The notes beneath the pieces are model-generated. The model saw only the letters and a program-made list of their open reading frames with translations. It was not told the DNA's origin and made no database searches. Of a DNA stretch of 64,000 nucleotides, positions 20,733 to 45,139 are shown piece after piece. The position numbers and the translations under genes are program-made. Within the stretch, counting starts at the first letter, position 1. Every line of letters starts with the position of its first letter. Location: the sequence record NC_049383.1, one strand, 5' to 3'.

Positions 20733-20802
20733 CTATTTAAAAATCCGATTTTTATAAGAATCGGATTTTTTGTATAAAAATTACATTTTTCTACAAAAAA
20801 AT

Positions 20803-20833
20803 TTTGCAGGTAATTAGAAAAGTTATATATTTG
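20803..20833 (+). promoter_or_regulatory. Bacteroidota housekeeping-type promoter for the tRNA cluster
   Basis: TTTG (20803) - 19 nt - TATATTTG (20826). Confidence 0.75.
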
Positions 20834-20849
20834 CATAAGTAATAACAAA

Positions 20850-20923
20850 GCCGAGTTGGTCGAGTGGTTAAGACGCAAGACTCTAAATCTTCGAAATCAC
20901 GGGTTCGAATCCCGTACTCGGCA
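20850..20923 (+). tRNA. Amber suppressor tRNA, anticodon CTA (reads UAG)
   Basis: Acceptor GCCGAGT/ACTCGGC-A, D arm GTC/GAC, anticodon arm CAAGA-CTCTAAA-TCTTC, T arm ACGGG-TTCGAAT-CCCGT; CCA not encoded. Confidence 0.88.
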
Positions 20924-21081: not shown

Positions 21082-21158
21082 GATGGTGTGTTGACATAGT
21101 GATTTGTATTGCCGATTGTAAAAACATTATAACCGTAGTTCGAATCCACCACACGTCA
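21082..21158 (+). pseudogene. Degenerate tRNA-like sequence
   Basis: GTTCGAATCC T loop, bulged acceptor GATG-G-TGT/ACA-CGTC; no clean anticodon arm. Confidence 0.4.
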
Positions 21159-21168
21159 CAAACTAAAA

Positions 21169-21361: not shown

Positions 21362-21440
21362 GGTTGTATAGCTCAGTTGGTAGAGCGTTCGCGGGTATAT
21401 TACCCTCGAAAGGTCGCAGGTTCGAGTCCTGTTACAACCA
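21362..21440 (+). tRNA. Atypical tRNA-like RNA with extended anticodon arm, copy 1
   Basis: Canonical acceptor GGTTGTA/TACAACC, D arm GCTC/GAGC, T arm; anticodon arm 23 nt TTCG-C-GGG-TATATTA-CCC-T-CGAA instead of 17. Confidence 0.8.
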
Positions 21441-21447
21441 CGAATTA

Positions 21448-21521
21448 GGATATGGTGTTTAATTAGGACAGAACGCGCCTATTTACGGTATAGGTTCTGT
21501 GGTAGAATCACATCATATTCA
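21448..21521 (+). tRNA. Atypical tRNA-like RNA (ACG at anticodon position, non-canonical T loop)
   Basis: GGATATG/CATATTC acceptor, GTTT/GAAC D stem, CCTAT-TTACGGT-ATAGG, T loop GTAGAAT lacks TTC. Confidence 0.5.
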
Positions 21522-21524
21522 TTT

Positions 21525-21597
21525 GGTCTTGAAGTTAGTGGGTTTTAACACTATACGCGGAGTATAGAGGTCACAGGTTCGAATCCTGTCTTGACCA
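21525..21597 (+). tRNA. Atypical tRNA-like RNA (no U33, CGG at anticodon position)
   Basis: Canonical T arm ACAGG-TTCGAAT-CCTGT, D stem GTTA/TAAC, CTATAC-GCGGA-GTATAG arm, acceptor with two T-T mismatches. Confidence 0.6.
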
Positions 21598-21600
21598 CGA

Positions 21601-21724
21601 CTGTTTGTAAATCGAACTATAATAGATTTATAATGAATCAAACCTTTATAGAGGTGGTGGATTCCCTGTGATAACTCAATATCACCAGTTAGGATAGGTG
21701 AAGACTATTATGTGAAGTCCTAAC
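21601..21724 (+). ncRNA. Candidate structured RNA between tRNA-like genes
   Basis: TGTAAATC/GATTTATA, GTGATA/TATCAC and GTTAGGAT/GTCCTAAC stems. Confidence 0.35.
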
Positions 21725-21728
21725 ATTT

Positions 21729-21807
21729 GGTTGTATAGCTCAGTTGGTAGAGCGTTCGCGGGTATATTACCCTCGAAAGGTCGCAGGTTCAAGTCCTGCT
21801 ACAACCA
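21729..21807 (+). tRNA. Atypical tRNA-like RNA with extended anticodon arm, copy 2
   Basis: Identical to 21362-21440 except two structure-compatible T-arm changes. Confidence 0.8.
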
Positions 21808-21839: not shown

Positions 21840-22082
21840 ATGGCAAATGATTTACTGAAACATGGTGATAAAATTCAATTTGTTGTTTATGGATTCTCAA
21901 AGGATGATACTGATTTGAATATTGAGGGTGAAAACGTTTCATTTTCGCAGTTATACGGTATGTATGGGTGTCAAATAAATAATGATGAAAATAATGAAGA
22001 AGTCGCTAGAAAGTGTAAACAAGTTGCTGATTTATTAGTAGAAATTAGAAAATTAAGTAAACCAAATGAAAAAACAAGTTAA
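21840..22082 (+). CDS. Hypothetical protein
   Basis: True start likely ATG 21840 after TATAAATA (21824); track start 21744 lies inside a tRNA. Confidence 0.6.
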   Translation: MANDLLKHGDKIQFVVYGFSKDDTDLNIEGENVSFSQLYGMYGCQINNDENNEEVARKCKQVADLLVEIRKLSKPNEKTS

Positions 22083-22536
22083 AAACGTTTCTGAATATCT
22101 AACGGAAGCCATGTTATCAAATCACTTACTTGAACGTTTATCGGGTAGAGTTGAGAAGTTTAATGAGGTAGATTTACCAAAGCAAAAGAAGCAAGAAATA
22201 TTAGATAATATTGAAAATGTTTCAAAGTTGAATTTTCCAAGTAATAAGGATTATGCTGTTATGGTTGGTTACTTCTCTATAAATCAAAAATCGGATTTAT
22301 ATGTTGAAGAACCTACAGGAAAGTATTATAGAATTTATGATTTCTTAGGTGTTGATTCAACAGGAAATCAAATTTGGATTATTATTAGAAGTGGAAATAT
22401 AGTTTCTGTAATGCTTAGAAAAGGTATTCAACCAGTAGAAAATATGAGAGTTGATGTTGTTGTAAAGAACATTAACAAGTTCATTAAAAACTTTAAAACT
22501 GGTGGTAGTAGAGGTAAAAAGAATCGTAAAAAGTAA
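22066..22536 (+). CDS. Hypothetical protein, putative processed virion protein
   Basis: N-terminal EYLTEA; basic C-terminal tail. Confidence 0.55.
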   Translation: MKKQVKNVSEYLTEAMLSNHLLERLSGRVEKFNEVDLPKQKKQEILDNIENVSKLNFPSNKDYAVMVGYFSINQKSDLYVEEPTGKYYRIYDFLGVDSTGNQIWIIIRSGNIVSVMLRKGIQPVENMRVDVVVKNINKFIKNFKTGGSRGKKNRKK

Positions 22537-22559
22537 TCATATTAAAAAACTATTATTAA

Positions 22560-22841
22560 ATGACAAAAGAAGTATTCTTAGAGCAAAACGAAGGCAAAAT
22601 CATTGATTTTTACGCTGATTGGTGTAGTCCTTGTAAAGTATTAAAACCTAAATTAGAATCAATTAATGAAGATGATTCTGATTTAGAAGTGAATTTTGTT
22701 AACGTTGGTGAACAAGCTGAAATCGGTGCTATGTTTAATGTTCGTTCAATCCCAACATTATTATATGTTAAAGATGGTGAGACTCATGTTATTACAGCTC
22801 GTGATGTTAACGGAATTAAGGCACAAGTAGAAGAAATTTAA
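22560..22841 (+). CDS. trxA: Thioredoxin
   Basis: IDFYADWCSPCKVLKP, VRSIPTLL. Confidence 0.9.
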   Translation: MTKEVFLEQNEGKIIDFYADWCSPCKVLKPKLESINEDDSDLEVNFVNVGEQAEIGAMFNVRSIPTLLYVKDGETHVITARDVNGIKAQVEEI

Positions 22842-22861
22842 ACCAAAAACAAATATAAATT

Positions 22862-23299
22862 ATGAAGTATTTCTTAGTATCTATTGCACACCAAGTGGAA
22901 ATTCCACAGGAAGATGCAAACAAAGACCCAAAAATTAAAACAAAGAAGGATAAAGTTTTAGTTGAAGCAGAAAATTATGGTGATGCTGAAAAACAATCTT
23001 ATGAGTATGCTGAACAACACTCATTAAAAACCTTTTCTGTTGAATCAATCACTATTAAAAACATTTCTCGTGTTTATGTTGATAAAGATTCTGTTGGTGA
23101 AAATTCTGCTTACTTTGATGTAACAACAAAGTATGAGTATGAAGATGATAAAGGTAAAACTAAAGTTGAGAAATCAAATGTTGTTATCGAAGCATCTAAT
23201 TTGGATAGTGCATATAAATTCTGTTTAAATGAATTTGAGGATGAGAAAATCCACAAATTAGAATCATCAGTTATTGTAGATACTGTTCTACAAGAGTAA
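22862..23299 (+). CDS. DUF4494-like protein (Bacteroidota-type)
   Basis: Two-repeat pattern LVEAENYGDAEK / VVIEASNLDSA recalled from DUF4494. Confidence 0.55.
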   Translation: MKYFLVSIAHQVEIPQEDANKDPKIKTKKDKVLVEAENYGDAEKQSYEYAEQHSLKTFSVESITIKNISRVYVDKDSVGENSAYFDVTTKYEYEDDKGKTKVEKSNVVIEASNLDSAYKFCLNEFEDEKIHKLESSVIVDTVLQE

Positions 23300-23344
23300 A
23301 AAAATCACCCAATTGGGTGATTTTTTATTTTTCGACACTTTTTA

Positions 23345-23375
23345 TTTGGTTGTTCAGAATAAATCATTATATTTG
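23345..23375 (+). promoter_or_regulatory. Bacteroidota-type promoter of the Pth2-like/HD gene
   Basis: TTTG (23345) - 19 nt - TATATTTG (23368). Confidence 0.75.
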
Positions 23376-23412: not shown

Positions 23413-24366
23413 ATGAAATAGATAACCAAAAATTCAAATCGTTCTAACAAGGTTGAGCAAAGTCAAAAATTTAGAATTATAACACGCTCAGATTTAAGTG
23501 TTGGTCAAGCTGTTGTTCAAACAGCCCATGTAGCCGCGGAATTTCAAATGAATTTCCCAACCGAATATGAAACATGGTTAAAAACAAATAGAAGTATAAT
23601 TACATTTTCGGCAAAGAATGGTAAAGAACTTCTCGAATATGAGACACTCTTAAAATCAAAGGGAGTCCAAACCTATAGGTTCTATGAACCCGATTATAAT
23701 CAAATAACGGGTATCGGAATAGTACCTAGTGACCAAGCTAGAAAAATGACATCATCTTTAAAACTTTTTAGACATACACAACAAGAAATGTATTTCGACG
23801 AGGTTACAAGAGATATGAGTCGTACCGAACAAATGGATAACCTTTCCGTACTACAACATGGTGAAATGGTACACGACTATTATAAAATGATAGTTTCAAA
23901 TCAAATGTGTAACCTTTCAAAATTTGAAAAAGTACCTAAATGGTTACTCGAAAATAAAGCGTATATTCTAAATGAATTGTCTAAATTTGATTTCAACGCA
24001 ATCAAAGATTATCAAATAATGCATGATTTGGGTAAACCATACTGTATTCAAATTGATGAAAATGGTAGAAGACATTTCCCGAACCACGCGCAAGTTTCAT
24101 ATGATACTTGGAAAAAGTTAAATGGTGACCCTTTTGTTGGTAACTTAATACTTAATGATATGAAAATGCATACAATGAAGGCATCAGATATTGAAGACTT
24201 TATGAAAATAGAGGGTTACTTAATATTAATGGTAACATCAGTTGCTGAATTATACGCAAATGCTGAAATGTTTGGTGGTTATGAATCAACTTCATTCAAA
24301 ATTAAATTCAAACAGTTAGAAAAGAGAGGAAATGCTATCTTTAGAATCATAAATGAATCTAAGTAA
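23413..24366 (+). CDS. Pth2 (peptidyl-tRNA hydrolase II)-like domain fused to an HD domain; in-frame TAG at codon 3
   Basis: ATG AAA TAG then an open frame: KFRIITRSDLSVGQAVVQTAHVAAEF...W...FYEPDYNQITGIGIVP (Pth2/PTRHD1-like); C half VLQH...MHDLGKP...HFPNHA (HD). Confidence 0.75.
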
Positions 24367-30448: not shown

Positions 30449-33149
30449 TCACAAAACCATTTTTTATTCTCTTTACACTACCAAACTTTGTTTCTACATC
30501 AAGTTCTAATGTATATGAACCTTTATATATTAACATATTTCTATATACTAAAGAACTCTGTGTATCTAAAATTTCACCTGTTAGAGCGTCTTTTAAAGTC
30601 CAAAGGTAATCAGCACCATCAATTAACGTTTTAGTGTCTATAAACGCATAAAATGGAACACCTAGACTAACTATATCACCAGTAGGTGCTTCTTTTAATC
30701 TAGAACCCTCAACACCTCTAGGAGAATCTTTAACATATCCGAATGATTCATGTTTTATATTTATTTCCTCTAATGATGATACAATTAAATGATTACCAAG
30801 GTCAAAAACACTAACTCTAATACCTAAATTTTCATATTGTGTTTCTAATTCCGTTTTTAAATCTGATGTATTTGTCACATCAAAATTACTTACCACAGAA
30901 CCGTTTATGTATAAATCATTCGCGCCTTTTGTCAAGTCAGGATAAATATTAACATAAGAACTAAATGGCATAACAGTATAAATGTCTTCCTTATGTTCTA
31001 GTGTTGTGTTATAATCAGAAGCATTTGTTTCTAAAATGAAATGATTGATACCAAACCCAACATTTTTTCCAGTTAACCTCAACATCAATTTAGAACTTAA
31101 AATATCTGTCTCAGAATATGATTGAATTGTCGCGGTAAAGTTATCCAATAATCCTGATGATTCATTTATAGCACTAACAACATCATTATAAAACTTATAA
31201 TCTTCATCATAAATAGCTGAATCATAATGTACTGTTACTTCAATCCAATCATGATGCTCAAACTCTTTTATTAAAATAGTTCTATCACCAGTTGTTCCAT
31301 CACCTATTAAATCAACCATAAATCTAGCATACTCATAACCATAATCCGTTAACCTAGTGTGTATTAAATCACTGATTTTCAATGAGTTGTATTGAAAAGA
31401 ATTTAATTGAAGTGTTCTTTTATCATAATCTTTTGCATTATAACGGAATATAAGGTTTGAATTTGTACTTTCTTGCCAAGTATTTATATCATAGGTATCA
31501 TCAAAAATATCTATTTGGATAGTTCTATTATCATCCTTATAAGTTTCAAAAGTACTCCAAAAGTCTAATCCTTTTAAATCACTTGTTTCACTTCTATCTA
31601 ATTTTGCTAATTTGAAATCTATATTTCCTAAAACTATTTCAAATTCCTGATTATTTGGGTTCATTAATGTTACACCACCGTAATAATCAAATAGATAAAC
31701 CATTATTTTAAACTTTCCAAGTTCTGCAATTCCGAATTTAATAGAATTATCAACAAGTTCATCAATTTCGTATAATGATGATGTATAAACACTAACATCA
31801 TCTTTTATTATTTCAAATTTGAACCTAGAATATTTTGAAGTATCAGCGTCTATGTTTATTTCAACTAATCCAAAGTCGTTTCTAAGATACTTTTCTAAAT
31901 AATCTAAATCATCTAAATGAAAGTTAACATCATCAAGTTCATCAACTTCATAGTTAAGAACTTTATCAATCTCAAAATATTTATAATCGAATTTAGTATC
32001 TGTAACACCCGCTTGATACTCACCTGTATAATTTGAGTCATTCGGATTTATTACCTTTAATAGAGGAACTTTTCTCAATACTTCATGTTCTGAAATTTCA
32101 ATAACGCTTTGTGATAGGTTGAAATCGAAACCACCATCTGAATGTTCATTTATATTAACATCAAAAAATGTTTGTACATTATCCCATATCCTAGCATCAA
32201 TACCAACTGTTCCTTTTTGTTCACCAATAATATCAACTATTTTTGTATTTAATGGTAAAAAGTCGCGTTCTAAAACACGTCTAAGAGCGTACATTTTTAT
32301 TAAAATTTCCTCGGTGTTTAATAAAACATTTACATAATTAGGTAAACCATCAGAATCAAAAGTTCCATCCCAATCATTTATTTTATAAACTAGTTGCATT
32401 TGGTTTGTTTTACGAAAACCAGTAAGGCGTTTATCAATACTATCTAAAACCATTTTATCAACATCTGTTGTTGTGTATCTCTCACCATTTTTCCATATCT
32501 CTCGAATTGTTAAAAGGTCACCATACCCAAAATAATCTAAAGCATTTAATAAAGCATCATAAGAGCCAATACCCGCAGTTAATTCAAAATATCTCAAAAG
32601 GTATTCTTTACGCTTTTCATTCATTAATTTTTGGTCTATGTCTGATGTTTTATAGTCAGTATCACTAAATGCTTGATAATAATCATCATTAATATCAATT
32701 TTTCTATTTTGTGTATGAACAATCAACTTAGAATCTATACCTATTATATTTACTGATACTTTGAATGTATAAGATAATGGAACACCATCTATTTCATATG
32801 AAACATTCATATCAGTTTCGAAAGAACCTTCTTTATCACTAAAAACTAATAAGTTCCATTTACGAATTTGATAACCATTATTATCAGGTAATCTAAGTTC
32901 TGTATCTGTTGCTGATGTTGTCTCTATAAAATTATCAGTTAAACCATCACGATATGCGATACTAAATTCTCTACTTGATACGGTAACGTTAAAGTTAGAT
33001 ATAGTTTTTGATGTATCGAATAATGACACAAACGTTTTATTATTAACGATGTTTATTGATGTGTTATCTAATGTTATAGAATCAACCTGCTGTTTAGTAC
33101 TTGAATCTACATAAACACTAGCTTTTTTGTTTTTTAAACTTAAAATCAT
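30438..33149 (-). CDS. Putative virion structural (baseplate) protein
   Basis: 903 aa, beta-rich, first gene of baseplate operon. Confidence 0.5.
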   Translation of the reverse strand: MILSLKNKKASVYVDSSTKQQVDSITLDNTSINIVNNKTFVSLFDTSKTISNFNVTVSSREFSIAYRDGLTDNFIETTSATDTELRLPDNNGYQIRKWNLLVFSDKEGSFETDMNVSYEIDGVPLSYTFKVSVNIIGIDSKLIVHTQNRKIDINDDYYQAFSDTDYKTSDIDQKLMNEKRKEYLLRYFELTAGIGSYDALLNALDYFGYGDLLTIREIWKNGERYTTTDVDKMVLDSIDKRLTGFRKTNQMQLVYKINDWDGTFDSDGLPNYVNVLLNTEEILIKMYALRRVLERDFLPLNTKIVDIIGEQKGTVGIDARIWDNVQTFFDVNINEHSDGGFDFNLSQSVIEISEHEVLRKVPLLKVINPNDSNYTGEYQAGVTDTKFDYKYFEIDKVLNYEVDELDDVNFHLDDLDYLEKYLRNDFGLVEINIDADTSKYSRFKFEIIKDDVSVYTSSLYEIDELVDNSIKFGIAELGKFKIMVYLFDYYGGVTLMNPNNQEFEIVLGNIDFKLAKLDRSETSDLKGLDFWSTFETYKDDNRTIQIDIFDDTYDINTWQESTNSNLIFRYNAKDYDKRTLQLNSFQYNSLKISDLIHTRLTDYGYEYARFMVDLIGDGTTGDRTILIKEFEHHDWIEVTVHYDSAIYDEDYKFYNDVVSAINESSGLLDNFTATIQSYSETDILSSKLMLRLTGKNVGFGINHFILETNASDYNTTLEHKEDIYTVMPFSSYVNIYPDLTKGANDLYINGSVVSNFDVTNTSDLKTELETQYENLGIRVSVFDLGNHLIVSSLEEINIKHESFGYVKDSPRGVEGSRLKEAPTGDIVSLGVPFYAFIDTKTLIDGADYLWTLKDALTGEILDTQSSLVYRNMLIYKGSYTLELDVETKFGSVKRIKNGFVIVD

Positions 33150-33230
33150 TGTAATATATTTTTCTTATTTTATTTATTGTTTGGAATTGATATTTAATTT
33201 ACATATATTTGTTCCCTAAATTAAATTTAT

Positions 33231-33437
33231 ATGAATACAGATATTAATAAACCTCTAAAGGATAATGATGAAAGTGGTATATCATTTCATTCATCTTATG
33301 TGCCTTTGGAAAGACCCGACTTAGGGGAATGGATGGAAAAGCACCATGTAAGCGGACAAATTATGTCTATTCCTAGTGCTTTGACTAAAGCAATAGAATA
33401 TGAACAATTAAAAACAGAACTTTATGAAAGAGCTTAA
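33231..33437 (+). CDS. Hypothetical protein
   Basis: After TATATTTG near 33205. Confidence 0.5.
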   Translation: MNTDINKPLKDNDESGISFHSSYVPLERPDLGEWMEKHHVSGQIMSIPSALTKAIEYEQLKTELYERA

Positions 33438-38126: not shown

Positions 38127-38561
38127 ATGAATATAAATATTATTAGAGAATACCTTTTATCAGGGTCAGTTTTCGCAAACGATACAAATAATGGTAAACT
38201 TTTTTATAAAGATGGTAAATTAAACTTTGAGTTCAAAAGTGGTAATACTGATATAACTATAATGAACTACCAAATACCTGAGCATTTAAAATTGGTTCTT
38301 ATGCGTATTAGTGATTTGAAAAACTCACCAATGGCTTTAGCAGAAATACATAGCATTTATTCTAAGGCTGTGCCGATTTTAGAAAATATAAGTCATGAAA
38401 CTTTAGCAGATTCTTTGGAAAATGTTGTTAAAGATGGAACTGTATTTGAATTACCATACAATGTTGTAAAACGTCTTATTTCAATGGGTTATGATGTATA
38501 TAATCTTATTGATAGTGGTGATGCTTTAGAACTTAATGTTAAAAACACAACAAATGAATAG
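38127..38561 (+). CDS. Hypothetical protein
   Basis: ORF with TAG stop overlapping next start. Confidence 0.55.
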   Translation: MNINIIREYLLSGSVFANDTNNGKLFYKDGKLNFEFKSGNTDITIMNYQIPEHLKLVLMRISDLKNSPMALAEIHSIYSKAVPILENISHETLADSLENVVKDGTVFELPYNVVKRLISMGYDVYNLIDSGDALELNVKNTTNE

Positions 38562-39573
38562 TTTATTCCCAGTTACACATATTACACCATCAGATGAGCC
38601 ACATATATATGCAATGGTTGGTTTACCTGCAACTGGTAAAAGTACTTACGCAAGACAATTGCGTTTAAAGTTGGAAAAGGAAGGTAAAAATGCGGTAATT
38701 GTTTCACGCGATGCATTAAGAAAACAATTATATGGTTATGATGATTCGAACCTATCACTTTATTATTTGAATGATTCACAAGAAATGTTCAAGAGAATGA
38801 AAAGGATTTCTGAATTTGAAGATAATATGATTTATGATGCATTATCTAGAGGTTATAAAGTTATTTTAGACTCTTCACACCTTGAATATAAGAACATTAA
38901 GAAATTAAAGTACTGGAATGTTCCTGTTGAATTGGTTATCATTGAGGTTGATAAAAAGAACTTCAAAACTATTAAAGGTTTGGATGATAATCGTGAAAAG
39001 GGTATTGGTGAAGATAAGTTGAAAAGACTTTTTGACCGCTATAATTTCACTAGACAGAAGTTAAAAGATGAGCCTTTCGATTTCACACCTATTGAAAAAC
39101 CATCATATGATGTGATGAAAGATAATTGTATAATATTCGATTTAGATGGAACTTTAGCACACAATAATTGTGGAAGACGTTTTAATGACATGACTAGAAC
39201 TGGCGAAGATTCATACCACAATGATATTTGTAGTATATTAGAGCTTATTTCTAGAGGTCGTAATGATAATACATATAAAACTATGTTAAATCGTCAGAAA
39301 AACCCTAGAATAATATTTTGTAGTGGTCGTTCTGAGCAAGCTAAAGAAGATACATTAAACTGGATTTCTAAGATTTATAACGTACATACATCAGACCTAT
39401 ATATGCGAGAAGATGGTGACAAAAGAGAAGATTGGAAAGTTAAGCAGGAAATGTGGGCTAAATTAGAAGAGAATTACAACATTATTGCAATGTTTGATGA
39501 TAGAAGTCAAGTCGTTAGAAGGGCTAGAGCTTTGGGTTATAGAGTATTACAAGTATCACAAAACAATTTTTAA
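38554..39573 (+). CDS. pseT: Polynucleotide 5'-kinase / 3'-phosphatase (PseT-like)
   Basis: N-terminal P-loop GLPATGKST with SRDALR; C-terminal HAD DLDGTL...SGR...FDDR; start 38554 or 38536. Confidence 0.88.
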   Translation: MNSLFPVTHITPSDEPHIYAMVGLPATGKSTYARQLRLKLEKEGKNAVIVSRDALRKQLYGYDDSNLSLYYLNDSQEMFKRMKRISEFEDNMIYDALSRGYKVILDSSHLEYKNIKKLKYWNVPVELVIIEVDKKNFKTIKGLDDNREKGIGEDKLKRLFDRYNFTRQKLKDEPFDFTPIEKPSYDVMKDNCIIFDLDGTLAHNNCGRRFNDMTRTGEDSYHNDICSILELISRGRNDNTYKTMLNRQKNPRIIFCSGRSEQAKEDTLNWISKIYNVHTSDLYMREDGDKREDWKVKQEMWAKLEENYNIIAMFDDRSQVVRRARALGYRVLQVSQNNF

Positions 39574-40995: not shown

Positions 40996-41071
40996 CTTAA
41001 AAATGACTGTTTAAAAAATGTTTGGTTTATGTGTTAAAAATAACTATATTTGCTCACTAAAAATTTATAAA

Positions 41072-42130
41072 ATGAAAGTAGATTTAAAATTAAGTGGATT
41101 AGCTCTTTTTCAAACATTACGGAACTATGAAAAACGTGGTTTGGTAATTTCACAAAGACATCCACAAAACAAAGAAATTATTATTTGGAATTATTCTAAA
41201 CAAACTCAATATGATAATCATTGGGATGAAATAACTTTGAATGCACGTAGTTTGGTAACGAATACCAAAGGTGATATTATTGCTCGTGGTTTTCCTAAGT
41301 TTTTCAATTATGAAGAACCTGAGTTCGAATTACCTGATACAAAACTCTATAATATTAAGTATTTCAAAAAGCTAGATGGTTCTCTTATCTTGCTTTTCAA
41401 TTATGAGGGTCGTTGGTATGTTTCATCTAGAGGTTCTTTTGAATCAGACCAATGCAATATGGCTAAATCAATACTTCGTGATAAATACAACGGATATTCT
41501 AATTGGTTGGATAAAGATTTAACATATTGTTTAGAACTTATACACCCATCAAATAGAGTTGTTGTTGATTATGGTGATGAAGAAGATTTGATTATGATAG
41601 GTATTTTGACATCAAATATGCAAAGTGTCGATATGTCAAAACTTACTTGTGGTGATTTCAGATATCAAAAAGAAGAGTTGATACCTTTTGATGATTTCAA
41701 ATTAATACAGCAACAAGATACTGAAAATGAGGAAGGGTATGTTATGCTATTCCCTAATGGATATCGTGGAAAGATTAAGTTTGAGAATTATAAGTACTTG
41801 CATTATTTGTATGGTGAATTTTCACCTTTAGCTATTTGGAAGTGTTTGAAAGAAAAAGATAATGATAGATTGATGTTTATAAAGGATAATACACCCGATG
41901 AGTTCTATGATGAGGTTAAAAAATGTATTTTCAAACTTAAAAAACAATTCTTTCAAATAAAGAACACAATATTAAGCGATTTAAACGACTTTTTACCTGA
42001 CGACTATATAAACGACCATGAATTGTTTAAAAGTCTCGGAAAACGTCTAATAACAGCCTTTAACGATGAATATAAGCTAGATAGGATGATATGGGATGAT
42101 ATAAAACCTAAAAACAATATTTTTTCATAA
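41072..42130 (+). CDS. rnlA: RNA ligase 1 (T4 Rnl1-like)
   Basis: ARGFPKFFNY, KLDGSL (adenylated Lys), SRGSF, ELIHPSNR, EGYV, KIKFE; ATG 41072 after TATATTTG. Confidence 0.9.
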   Translation: MKVDLKLSGLALFQTLRNYEKRGLVISQRHPQNKEIIIWNYSKQTQYDNHWDEITLNARSLVTNTKGDIIARGFPKFFNYEEPEFELPDTKLYNIKYFKKLDGSLILLFNYEGRWYVSSRGSFESDQCNMAKSILRDKYNGYSNWLDKDLTYCLELIHPSNRVVVDYGDEEDLIMIGILTSNMQSVDMSKLTCGDFRYQKEELIPFDDFKLIQQQDTENEEGYVMLFPNGYRGKIKFENYKYLHYLYGEFSPLAIWKCLKEKDNDRLMFIKDNTPDEFYDEVKKCIFKLKKQFFQIKNTILSDLNDFLPDDYINDHELFKSLGKRLITAFNDEYKLDRMIWDDIKPKNNIFS

Positions 42131-43830: not shown

Positions 43831-44643
43831 ATGGAAAAAAGTAAAAATTCAGTATTAGATAAAATCGAAAAGCTATTATCATTAGCTAATAATGAGGGAG
43901 CAAGCCAAGGAGAAATAGAAAATGCTATGAAAATGGCTGAGAAGCTAATGTTAAAACATGACATTGAGGCTGTTGATATAGAGATTGGTTCATTAGAAGT
44001 TAATGAAACTAAGGTTCAATTCGAAGAGGAAAAAGGATTTTACCCAAAGTGGCGTTATGAATTACTTAAAGAATTAGCATTAGCTAATATGTGTGAGCAT
44101 TTCTATAGTGATAAAAGAACTGCTGTTAATGTTATGACAGGTATGGGATGGAAATATGTTGTTCGTAAAACTGGTGAGTATTCTGTTACAATTATTGGTA
44201 GAAAAGACCGTAGAAAGACAGTATTTAAAATGTATGATTTATGTTCTAAGATGTTGCCTGAATTGGCGAAACAACGTTGGAAAGAATATCGTACACAAAA
44301 AGTTAAAAGTGCTAAAGAAATGGGAATCGATGCTACAGTTTCATTTTTGGTTAAGCATGATTTGATGTTTGATAGAAGAGTATTTTTTAATTCTTATTTG
44401 AAAGGTGCTTTTAAAGGTATTGTTGAGAAAATAGAATCTAATCTTGATGAATTATCACCTGCTGAAAAAGATAAATATCAGTTAGTTGTTGCAAAGAATG
44501 ACTTAGTTGTTCGAAATTATTTAACTGAAAAATATCCTAGTGTTAAATCTGTTAATAGAAGAAAAGGTAATATTAGTGCAGAGGCTTATAGAATGGGTGA
44601 ATCTGATGCTAAAAATATTGGAGAGAAACAATTAAATGCATAA
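43831..44643 (+). CDS. DUF2786-domain protein
   Basis: LDKIEKLLSLA....ASQGEIENAMKMAEKLMLKH and C-terminal AYRMG. Confidence 0.75.
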   Translation: MEKSKNSVLDKIEKLLSLANNEGASQGEIENAMKMAEKLMLKHDIEAVDIEIGSLEVNETKVQFEEEKGFYPKWRYELLKELALANMCEHFYSDKRTAVNVMTGMGWKYVVRKTGEYSVTIIGRKDRRKTVFKMYDLCSKMLPELAKQRWKEYRTQKVKSAKEMGIDATVSFLVKHDLMFDRRVFFNSYLKGAFKGIVEKIESNLDELSPAEKDKYQLVVAKNDLVVRNYLTEKYPSVKSVNRRKGNISAEAYRMGESDAKNIGEKQLNA

Positions 44644-45139
44644 AAATATGGGTATTGTTTTTAAAAGTAAAGTTATTTCAGGTACTGGTCACAGATTAGA
44701 CCCGTACAAAAAACCATATGATAAAAGAAAAGCTATAGATGTTACAAAGTCGGTTTTAGAGGAATTGAAACCGACTAAAGTTATTTCGGGTATGGCTTTA
44801 GGATTTGATACACATTTGGCTTTGGCGAGTTTGGAACTTGGTATTCCATTAGAATGTGCAATGCCTTATAAGGATTTTGGTACTCGTTGGAGTTCTAATC
44901 ACCAAAAAATTAGAGATTATATTTTAGGTGAATCCATGAAAGTTACAATTGTAAGTGATGGATTATATCATATTTCTAAATTACAAATAAGAAATGAATA
45001 CTTGGTAAATAATTGTAATACACTTTTAGCTTTCTTTAATGGAACTAATGGTGGAACAAAGAATTGTATTGAGTATGCAAAGAAAGTAGATAAAGAAATT
45101 ATTAACATTTTTGAAAAATATGAATCATGGAAATATTAA
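44636..45139 (+). CDS. SLOG family protein (YspA/DUF1273-like)
   Basis: TGHR, ISGMALGFD, RNEYLV, GGTKNCIEYA. Confidence 0.85.
   Translation: MHKNMGIVFKSKVISGTGHRLDPYKKPYDKRKAIDVTKSVLEELKPTKVISGMALGFDTHLALASLELGIPLECAMPYKDFGTRWSSNHQKIRDYILGESMKVTIVSDGLYHISKLQIRNEYLVNNCNTLLAFFNGTNGGTKNCIEYAKKVDKEIINIFEKYESWKY

Follow-up and report, generated by a model that had tools for sequence, protein, structure and literature searches.

Duplicated tRNA-like genes with an over-long, closed anticodon arm in Tenacibaculum phage pT24: probably maintained, non-decoding RNAs

Introduction

What would a phage gain from a transfer RNA (tRNA) gene whose anticodon arm can hardly read a codon? The question is raised by the genome of Tenacibaculum phage pT24 (genus Kungbxnavirus, a large phage of a fish bacterium; record NC_049383.1; 234,670 base pairs (bp), G+C ~28%). 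Its final 64 kb, the whole stretch of DNA analysed here and called the window, contains two nearly identical tRNA-like genes of 79 nucleotides (nt) in which the anticodon arm is drawn out to a closed rod of 23 nt. The window agrees with the record at 100% identity, its position 1 being record position 170,671, and window positions are used below unless the record or another contig is named. GenBank lists four tRNA genes for pT24, all of them in this cluster, as tRNA-Sup, tRNA-Undet, tRNA-Pro and tRNA-Undet. The rod-arm copies are the two genes labelled tRNA-Undet and were therefore already catalogued, without an explanation. Our literature search found no description of phage tRNA-likes with anticodon stems of at least 8 bp.

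It has long been asked why phages carry tRNA genes. A recent answer, that they replace tRNAs cut by host defences, covers only tRNAs that decode. The rod-arm genes share their clusters and their body with phage tRNAs, are merely 'undetermined' in annotation and would not decode. The analysis below indicates that the two copies are very probably maintained tRNA-derived genes that take no part in codon reading, and it leads to a ranked set of possible functions.

Results

A canonical tRNA body with a closed anticodon arm

The elements in question are the following.

21362-21440, + strand: rod-arm tRNA-like copy 1 (Rfam, ARAGORN, RNAfold)
21729-21807, + strand: rod-arm tRNA-like copy 2, 32 nt upstream of the gp297 start codon (Rfam, ARAGORN, RNAfold)

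Both had been proposed in an earlier note on this stretch as 79-nt tRNA-like copies, and Rfam and ARAGORN detect both on the + strand. The Rfam tRNA model (RF00005, gathering score 29) is matched end to end, over model positions 1-71, with 58.8 bits for copy 1 and 60.6 bits for copy 2. The sole anomaly in either alignment is a stretch of 15 nt instead of the expected 9 in the middle of the anticodon arm, which amounts to six extra nucleotides. Outside this arm the pairing is complete, with 7/7 pairs in the acceptor stem, 5/5 in the T stem and four in the D stem, and all 16 pairs of the top half are intact. The bases U8, A14, G15, G18, G19, A21, G26, C48, U54-U55-C56 and A58 are present as well. 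By model score, by the acceptor, D and T stems and by the tertiary bases, both copies are thus tRNAs in build. RNAfold returns a cloverleaf apart from the modified arm, with z-scores over the entire molecule of -3.5 and -5.1 for the two copies.

The 23-nt anticodon arm is folded by RNAfold into 4 bp, a C.U mismatch, 5 bp and a UAU triloop. In isolation it reaches -9.5 kcal/mol, compared to -2.0 +/- 1.7 kcal/mol for shuffled arms, of which a fraction of 0.0008 folds equally well or better. At least eight pairs anchored at the ends arise in just 366 of 200,000 arm shuffles (0.18%). If the loop is read as 7 nt on an 8-bp stem its sequence is UAUAUUA, which places A at position 33 and U at position 37. 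ARAGORN labels both copies tRNA-Ile(tat) and puts the anticodon at position 37, three places beyond the usual 34. A decoding tRNA should have an anticodon stem of 5 bp (at most 6), a 7-nt loop, U33 and a purine at position 37, and the rod-arm copies do not fit this description. According to a 2020 review of non-canonical tRNAs, anticodon stems are 5 bp long, with 6 bp only in Pyl tRNA and mitochondrial Ser(UCN) tRNA (PMC7609411). Because the hairpin is both over-long and closed, codon reading is almost certainly impossible. The description in the earlier note of textbook acceptor, D and T arms combined with a 23-nt anticodon arm that lacks U33, can zip to a triloop and does not fit decoding therefore holds. 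ARAGORN found no transfer-messenger RNA (tmRNA) in the window, and a search for antisense targets of the rod arm within the window gave no excess over chance.

Duplication and maintenance

Three further tRNA-type elements lie in the cluster.

20850-20923, + strand: amber suppressor tRNA, anticodon CUA, canonical, the first gene of the cluster (Rfam 65.2 bits; ARAGORN cta; GenBank tRNA-Sup)
21086-21160, + strand: decayed tRNA remnant, paralogue of the suppressor, GUA-like loop, unannotated (alignment to the suppressor)
21525-21597, + strand: third non-canonical tRNA-like, annotated tRNA-Pro (Rfam 37.1 bits)

The rod-arm copies are direct repeats 367 nt apart that are 97.5% identical over 79 nt. 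They differ at exactly two sites, position 57 in the T loop (G or A) and position 65 (U or C, giving a G.U or a G-C pair), and both differences are structure-neutral, in agreement with the structure-compatible T-arm changes described earlier. The identity of the two arms, to which the earlier note had attached importance, carries no weight because two differences placed in 79 nt would both fall outside the arm with a chance of ~0.5. More informative are the borders of the repeat. The similarity extends from one base before G1 to ~8 bases past the discriminator, and the flanks beyond are unalignable.

The remnant serves as an internal control for the fate of an unselected tRNA copy in the pT24 genome. 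It aligns without gaps to the suppressor tRNA at ~55% identity, its stems are lost, and Rfam does not report it even at E up to 10, while its 3' end is 80% identical to that of the suppressor (repeat D3). The rod-arm copies show no such loss of stems or conserved bases and score like the intact suppressor. A duplication bounded by the tRNA itself, with unalignable flanks, next to a neglected paralogue that has degraded, argues that the rod-arm copies have been maintained.

The loop of the remnant, UUGUAAA, reads as GUA and is Tyr-like, and this suggests that the suppressor arose from a Tyr-type tRNA by a change of G34 to C. The gene annotated as tRNA-Pro has the loop CGCGGAG, without U33, and an acceptor stem with a tandem U.U and 5/7 positions paired; RNAfold closes its anticodon arm to 6 bp with a 5-nt loop. 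Its 3' part is paralogous to the rod-arm copies (82% identity over 33 nt, repeat D1).

The same trait in two syntenic relatives

Searches by DNA pattern revealed no close relatives in IMG/VR, the GenBank phage set or a metagenome scan. In IMG/VR only pT24 itself was matched by the exact 23-nt arm, by the acceptor with the D arm and by the suppressor tRNA, and for gp226 and gp296 neither pattern searches nor the protein database gave a relative. Relatives were reached through homologues of the PTH2-like protein gp293, which pointed to two contigs of NCBI assemblies that are syntenic with pT24, L149 (232 kb, 63% gp293 identity) and L151 (228 kb, 61%). In each of them the corresponding site is taken by an amber suppressor tRNA (L151 7342-7413, 50.6 bits; L149 1147-1214, 27.2 bits), also preceded by a TAnnTTTG promoter box. 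Beside it each has a tRNA-like gene that scores above the Rfam threshold and has canonical D and T arms.

L151 7878-7965: tRNA-like, Rfam 43.3 bits, 22 nt replacing the 7-nt loop, arm 32 nt
L149 1486-1603: tRNA-like, Rfam 34.5 bits, 51 nt replacing the 7-nt loop, arm ~61 nt

The inserts are AU-rich hairpins that have no sequence in common with the pT24 arm. A search for the same arm with compensatory changes in related phages, which the earlier note had suggested as a check, therefore fails, the arms being 23, 32 and ~61 nt long in pT24, L151 and L149. Of the arm conservation considered there, sequence and length did not stand, but the trait did, namely canonical D and T arms combined with an over-long closed anticodon arm. 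It is conserved where the intergenic DNA is otherwise unalignable and thus appears to be a trait of the lineage. L151 has a second odd tRNA-like with an insertion in the D loop and the loop UCGUUUU. Three close variants of the relatives (L152, L153, L150) are 100% identical and so allowed no test based on polymorphism. Phages PTm1 and PTm5 have one neighbouring gene in common with pT24 and no tRNA at that place.

Ancestry and a wider set of rod-arm tRNA-likes

The body of the copies matches that of a tRNA-Ile(GAU) of a Sulfitobacter phage in G26 and in the stem UUCG-/-CGAA; the variable loops are similar, and the T arms nearly identical. In appearance, the pT24 copies are a tRNA-Ile in which 13 nt have taken the place of the 7-nt loop. 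Among E. coli tRNAs the closest body is that of tRNA-Lys (75%), a poorer match and one that is uninformative for a Bacteroidetes host. Canonical tRNAs built on this stem base, sought across genomes, had actinobacterial tRNA-Phe among the matches listed, which gave no information on the host or the ancestry. A metagenomic array with 23 tRNAs called on the phage-like contig L025 (4099-10996) and 8 more on its continuation L023, together with a tmRNA and an amber suppressor, includes a tRNA-Ile-like whose anticodon loop has 12 nt. It agrees with the pT24 RNAs in stem base and T arm and has a pyrimidine-pyrimidine mismatch at the stem position that matches the C.U of pT24.

A scan of IMG/VR for the same D arm followed by a T arm 6 +/- 1 nt too distant gave 18 other contigs, about half of which hold the extra nucleotides as an extended, capped anticodon hairpin. 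The caps are UNCG tetraloops in L005 and L007, a UCGCU loop in L009 and L014, and triloops in L008 and L022; anticodon stems of 8 bp occur in L009 and L020. Several of these genes sit inside tight arrays, with ordinary tRNAs 2-4 nt away. In a comparison of L009 with L014 the rod stays paired through 3-4 two-sided changes under an invariant UCGCU loop, and L005 and L007 have a G.G mismatch at the same place. Although the samples are tiny, these patterns point to selection at the RNA level on at least some of the rod-arm tRNA-likes.

The UCGCU-loop family, with an anticodon stem of 8-9 bp and embedded in arrays, was seen at L009 1119-1199, L024 3495-3575, L028 7-67 and L014 10456-10534; a scan for further members of the type returned just the two known ones. 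A wider spacing scan (loci L160-L278) cannot be used for counting the class because it is dominated by eukaryote-type, intron-bearing tRNA-Tyr(GUA) genes, largely from giant-virus bins. A census of odd phage tRNAs must first remove these genes.

Transcription unit, promoters and spacers

The remaining features of the cluster are listed here.

20739-20770, + strand: terminator-like hairpin ending gp226 (inverted repeat I1, 16-nt arms, 94% complementary, then a T run)
20803-20833, + strand: Bacteroidetes-type promoter (TTTG, 19 nt, TATATTTG), the sole promoter in the tRNA cluster (motif scan)
21448-21520, + strand: structured spacer, 73 nt, an 11-bp outer stem around a 7-bp inner stem (RNAfold)
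21598-21728: second spacer, 131 nt, several hairpins (fold z = -2.1)
21840-23326, + strand: four open reading frames (ORFs), gp297, gp296, thioredoxin gp295 and DUF4494 gp294, with a terminator at 23299-23326 (Pfam names)

The Bacteroidetes promoter consensus is well established. The motif TTTG-N17-23-TAnnTTTG occurs 21 times in the window where 7.3 matches are expected (~3x), and none of 100 shuffles reached 21. Sites include 11564, 13000, 18076, 20803, 23345, 24430, 33180, 41021 and 43779 and mostly lie just upstream of + strand genes, among them those for the RNA ligase Rnl1 and gp293. The distribution suggests that the block is read by the host polymerase. No promoter motif was found between 20833 and 23345, and no terminator follows the tRNA cluster before 23299-23326, so that the tRNA cluster and gp297-gp294 are probably one transcription unit. 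The same observations place copy 2 in the predicted 5' leader of gp297-gp294.

The spacer at 21448-21520 folds with -23.8 kcal/mol (z = -3.9), a value equalled by 0/200 shuffles. Both spacers may be releasable as small RNAs through tRNA processing. The first cannot be aligned to the clusters of the relatives, and neither spacer sequence is conserved there.

tRNA repair genes and other neighbours

Two genes further downstream bear on tRNA metabolism.

38536-39573, + strand: T4-type polynucleotide kinase-phosphatase Pnkp (Pfam HAD_PNKP 5.5e-34, AAA_33 1.7e-12; annotated Pnk)
41072-42130, + strand: T4 Rnl1-type RNA ligase (Pfam RNA_lig_T4_1 4.5e-19; own promoter 41021-41052)

In phage T4, Pnkp and Rnl1 repair tRNA that has been cut by the anticodon nuclease PrrC. 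Since the window encodes both enzymes, tRNA cleavage is a pressure on pT24.

The gene used to find the relatives follows the transcription unit.

23548-24366: PTH2-like gp293 (own promoter motif at 23345)

A proposed tie between the rod-arm RNAs and this Pth2-like protein is weak, in view of its own promoter after the terminator and its homologues, which are widespread among jumbo phages with many different hosts. The Pfam PTH2 model is matched over its C-terminal part only (E = 2e-4, just under the cut-off); Pfam gave no HD match and solved structures contained no relative, while two shorter homologues have a precomputed HD-domain hit (PF01966). The protein combines this weak match, located in its N-terminal part, with a conserved C-terminal part of ~180 residues that also occurs alone. 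At L156 10001-11511, in a metagenomic phage, a homologue lies beside genes for HD_4 (RelA/SpoT-type hydrolase) and aminoacyl-tRNA-synthetase-like proteins. This neighbourhood hints that the PTH2-like protein acts at the 3' end of tRNA.

Recoding of TAG was rejected, as 35/302 long ORFs genome-wide end in this codon. The amber suppressor is kept in all three related phages though TAG is an ordinary stop. The only TAG between two long in-frame segments in the whole genome separates gp159 from gp160 (568 + 182 codons, record 134215-136332), which makes this pair a candidate for a programmed read-through fusion. The product of gp264 (44636-45139), annotated as 'GTP-binding domain', matches Pfam YpsA/SLOG (5.8e-07) and DprA-like models; the YpsA/SLOG-type fold binds nucleotides and is frequent in conflict systems. 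Outside the window, the adjacent genes gp037 and gp038 (record 32066-33238) are each annotated 'ABC transporter ATP-binding' and may be a split gene.

Discussion

Possible functions of the rod-arm RNAs

The highest-ranked explanation, which we put forward tentatively, is that the rod-arm RNAs are nuclease-proof mimics of the tRNA body that act as decoys or competitors. The copies would be transcribed early from the single host-type promoter that they have in common with the amber suppressor tRNA, excised by RNase P, trimmed at the 3' end and provided with CCA. The product would adopt an L shape with a normal top half formed by the acceptor, T and D arms, whereas the anticodon arm would be a closed rod of ~10 bp without a single-stranded loop. 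Such an RNA could not be positioned on the ribosome and would offer nothing to cut to nucleases that attack the anticodon loop. It could occupy proteins that recognise the tRNA body, as part of a tRNA-directed conflict between phage and host, for which Pnkp and Rnl1 would also be carried, and the presence of two copies would raise the dose. This higher dose, the perfection of the rod, the covariation of rods in other arrays and the repair genes all speak for the decoy function. There are also documented cases of phage tRNAs that overcome defences based on tRNA cleavage (PMC10264068, PMC11464382, PMC11555353).

Several observations weigh against such a decoy. Bait for nucleases via the anticodon loop is ruled out because the arm is unlike any host anticodon stem-loop, and a sponge would face competition from the very large pool of host tRNA. 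The sequence and length of the arm are unconserved among the relatives, whose acceptor stems are imperfect (a tandem G.A/A.G in L151, a bulge in L149), as would fit relaxed constraint. The T arms of the tRNA-likes are alike within each genome and different between genomes, and the orthology of the tRNA-likes of the three phages is inferred from synteny only. The covariation was drawn from other families and from only two or three sequences. Finally, the other degenerate tRNAs of the cluster imply that decay is ongoing there.

A possibility ranked second, doubtful yet a serious rival, is that the copies are punctuation of the t-element kind, non-decoding tRNA-likes kept only as sites for RNase P and 3'-end processing. 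Cuts in the early transcript would then free the suppressor tRNA, the structured spacers and the four-gene messenger RNA. The setting is as for a t-element: a predicted single unit with flanking ORFs and RNAs, structured spacers that separate the tRNA-likes, and copy 2 close to the gp297 start codon. The L149 tRNA-like is likewise 14-15 nt from the ORFs on both sides, the relatives have in common only the top half, the part that RNase P recognises, while the arm drifts, and plant mitochondrial t-elements provide a precedent (PMC1920247). However, processing needs neither a perfectly paired rod nor two identical copies, the L151 tRNA-like has its own terminator ahead of the next ORF, and in dense arrays such as L009 and L024 the neighbouring tRNAs already give the cleavage sites. 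The compensatory changes in rods also argue for selection on an RNA product. The third-ranked alternative, also a serious rival though rather improbable, is that the copies are functionless tRNA-Ile pseudogenes whose hairpin grew by palindrome extension and that were recently duplicated or homogenised. The cluster is something of a graveyard, with the decayed remnant and a Pro-like gene that has acceptor mismatches and no U33; the arms of the relatives are entirely different and their acceptor stems flawed, the duplication or conversion could be young given two substitutions between copies, and GenBank uses the label Undet. Yet a random gain of 6 nt that leaves 9/10 positions paired is improbable, and the copies are flawless outside the arm and have a suppressor-like score when a neglected paralogue 200 nt away has become unrecognisable. 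Their flanks are unalignable despite 97.5% identity over the 79 nt, direct repeats of this length at this distance should, we infer, recombine away unless selected, and the trait is found again in the relatives, where the rest of the intergenic DNA cannot be aligned.

The two remaining options would restore decoding, and both are very unlikely. The copies could be precursors that lose the extra nucleotides as RNA, for instance to an endonuclease acting with Pnkp and Rnl1, and so become tRNA-Ile(UAU) or a similar tRNA. The phage does encode the healing and sealing enzymes, the insert varies in length between relatives as an intron might, and the body resembles phage tRNA-Ile(GAU). Against this, enumeration by hand of all contiguous 6-nt deletions of the 23-nt arm gave none with U33, a purine at 37 and a stem of 5 intact pairs, which makes splicing to a normal tRNA, the case that was to refute the earlier note, unlikely; the 22-nt insert of L151 likewise yields no U33 with a purine at 37 by deletion. 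There is no bulge-helix-bulge motif, group I introns would need far more than the extra 6, 15 and ~44 nt, the analysis identified no splicing endonuclease, and genuine tRNA-Tyr introns from giant-virus bins keep CUGUAG at the start of the loop, unlike the pT24 RNAs. The copies could also, with the same low probability, be unconventional decoders, in effect a tRNA-Ile(UAU) that reads AUA codons in an AT-rich phage. This would be in line with the ARAGORN label, the genomic G+C content and the canonical tRNA-Ile(UAU) genes that are common in other phage arrays. The Ile-like C29-G41 and A73, which follow established identity rules for Ile, are present too. It is opposed by three extra base pairs with no compensating shortening elsewhere, by A33 and U37, by a loop shut to 3 nt in the minimum-energy fold and by the 5-bp or at most 6-bp stems of the reviewed decoders (PMC7609411). 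The remaining probability falls to roles outside these five readings.

Beyond pT24, the rod-arm genes could represent a widespread, undescribed class of phage non-coding RNA, tRNA bodies with a rod-sealed arm that neutralise host proteins acting on tRNA without taking part in translation, with pT24 and its relatives as one lineage. We regard this generalisation as speculative and rather unlikely. Its members would be made in tRNA arrays, and their targets would be defence nucleases, acceptor-end toxins or sensors. The pT24 RNAs are both a lineage trait and part of a broader pattern. Should they prove to be matured, stable and protective, phage counter-defence would gain an RNA-mimic branch, and there would be a handle on host proteins that read the tRNA body. 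If they are processing signals, they would be a counterpart of organellar t-elements in a bacterial virus. Either outcome can be tested directly in a single culturable phage-host pair.

Comparison with known systems

Mimicry of the tRNA elbow is known from YrlA RNAs (RF02553), some members of which are phage-encoded. The termini of YrlA RNA are in its long stem rather than an acceptor stem, whereas those of the pT24 RNA are in the acceptor stem. The YrlA model gives 18 bits in the window and 23.5 bits in L151, compared to a gathering score of 69, and the rod-arm RNAs are thus not members. Phage T4 produces the small stable RNAs 'species 1' and 'species 2', of unknown function, which are co-transcribed and processed with its tRNAs. 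The pT24 RNAs are full cloverleaves, and the likeness to the T4 species is one of cluster setting.

Anticodon stems of more than 5 bp are a feature in common with Pyl and mitochondrial Ser(UCN) tRNAs, and Sec-like stems are also longer (PMC7609411). In the Pyl and mitochondrial Ser(UCN) tRNAs a single extra pair is offset by a shorter connector, a small D loop or a short variable loop, and the anticodon loop is normal, whereas the pT24 RNAs have three to five extra pairs that are uncompensated.

Plant mitochondrial t-elements (PMC1920247) resemble the pT24 copies as non-decoding, cloverleaf-like units with an intact acceptor and T region, which in pT24 lie in a predicted longer transcript. Signals of this type are eukaryotic or organellar, while the phage RNAs have a perfect D arm and tertiary bases as well, occur as two near-identical copies and have a cleavage that is only predicted. 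The mascRNA and the tRNA-like RNAs of gammaherpesvirus 68 are similar tRNA-like processing signals.

A functional parallel exists with phage tRNAs that evade defences. Reported examples are anticodon-loop variants of mycobacteriophages (PMC10264068), the T5 tRNA-Lys that acts against PARIS (PMC11464382) and the T5 tRNA-Tyr that acts against retron effectors (PMC11555353). Such tRNAs have retained the 5-bp stem and 7-nt loop and work through continued decoding, whereas the closed 23-nt arm of the pT24 copies would not allow the replacement of a cleaved tRNA; judged by structure, they are not functional decoders that stand in for a cut host tRNA. Like the defence-evading tRNAs, however, they lie in a tRNA cluster and are altered where anticodon nucleases attack, and as a further parallel pT24 also invests in tRNA repair through Pnkp and Rnl1.

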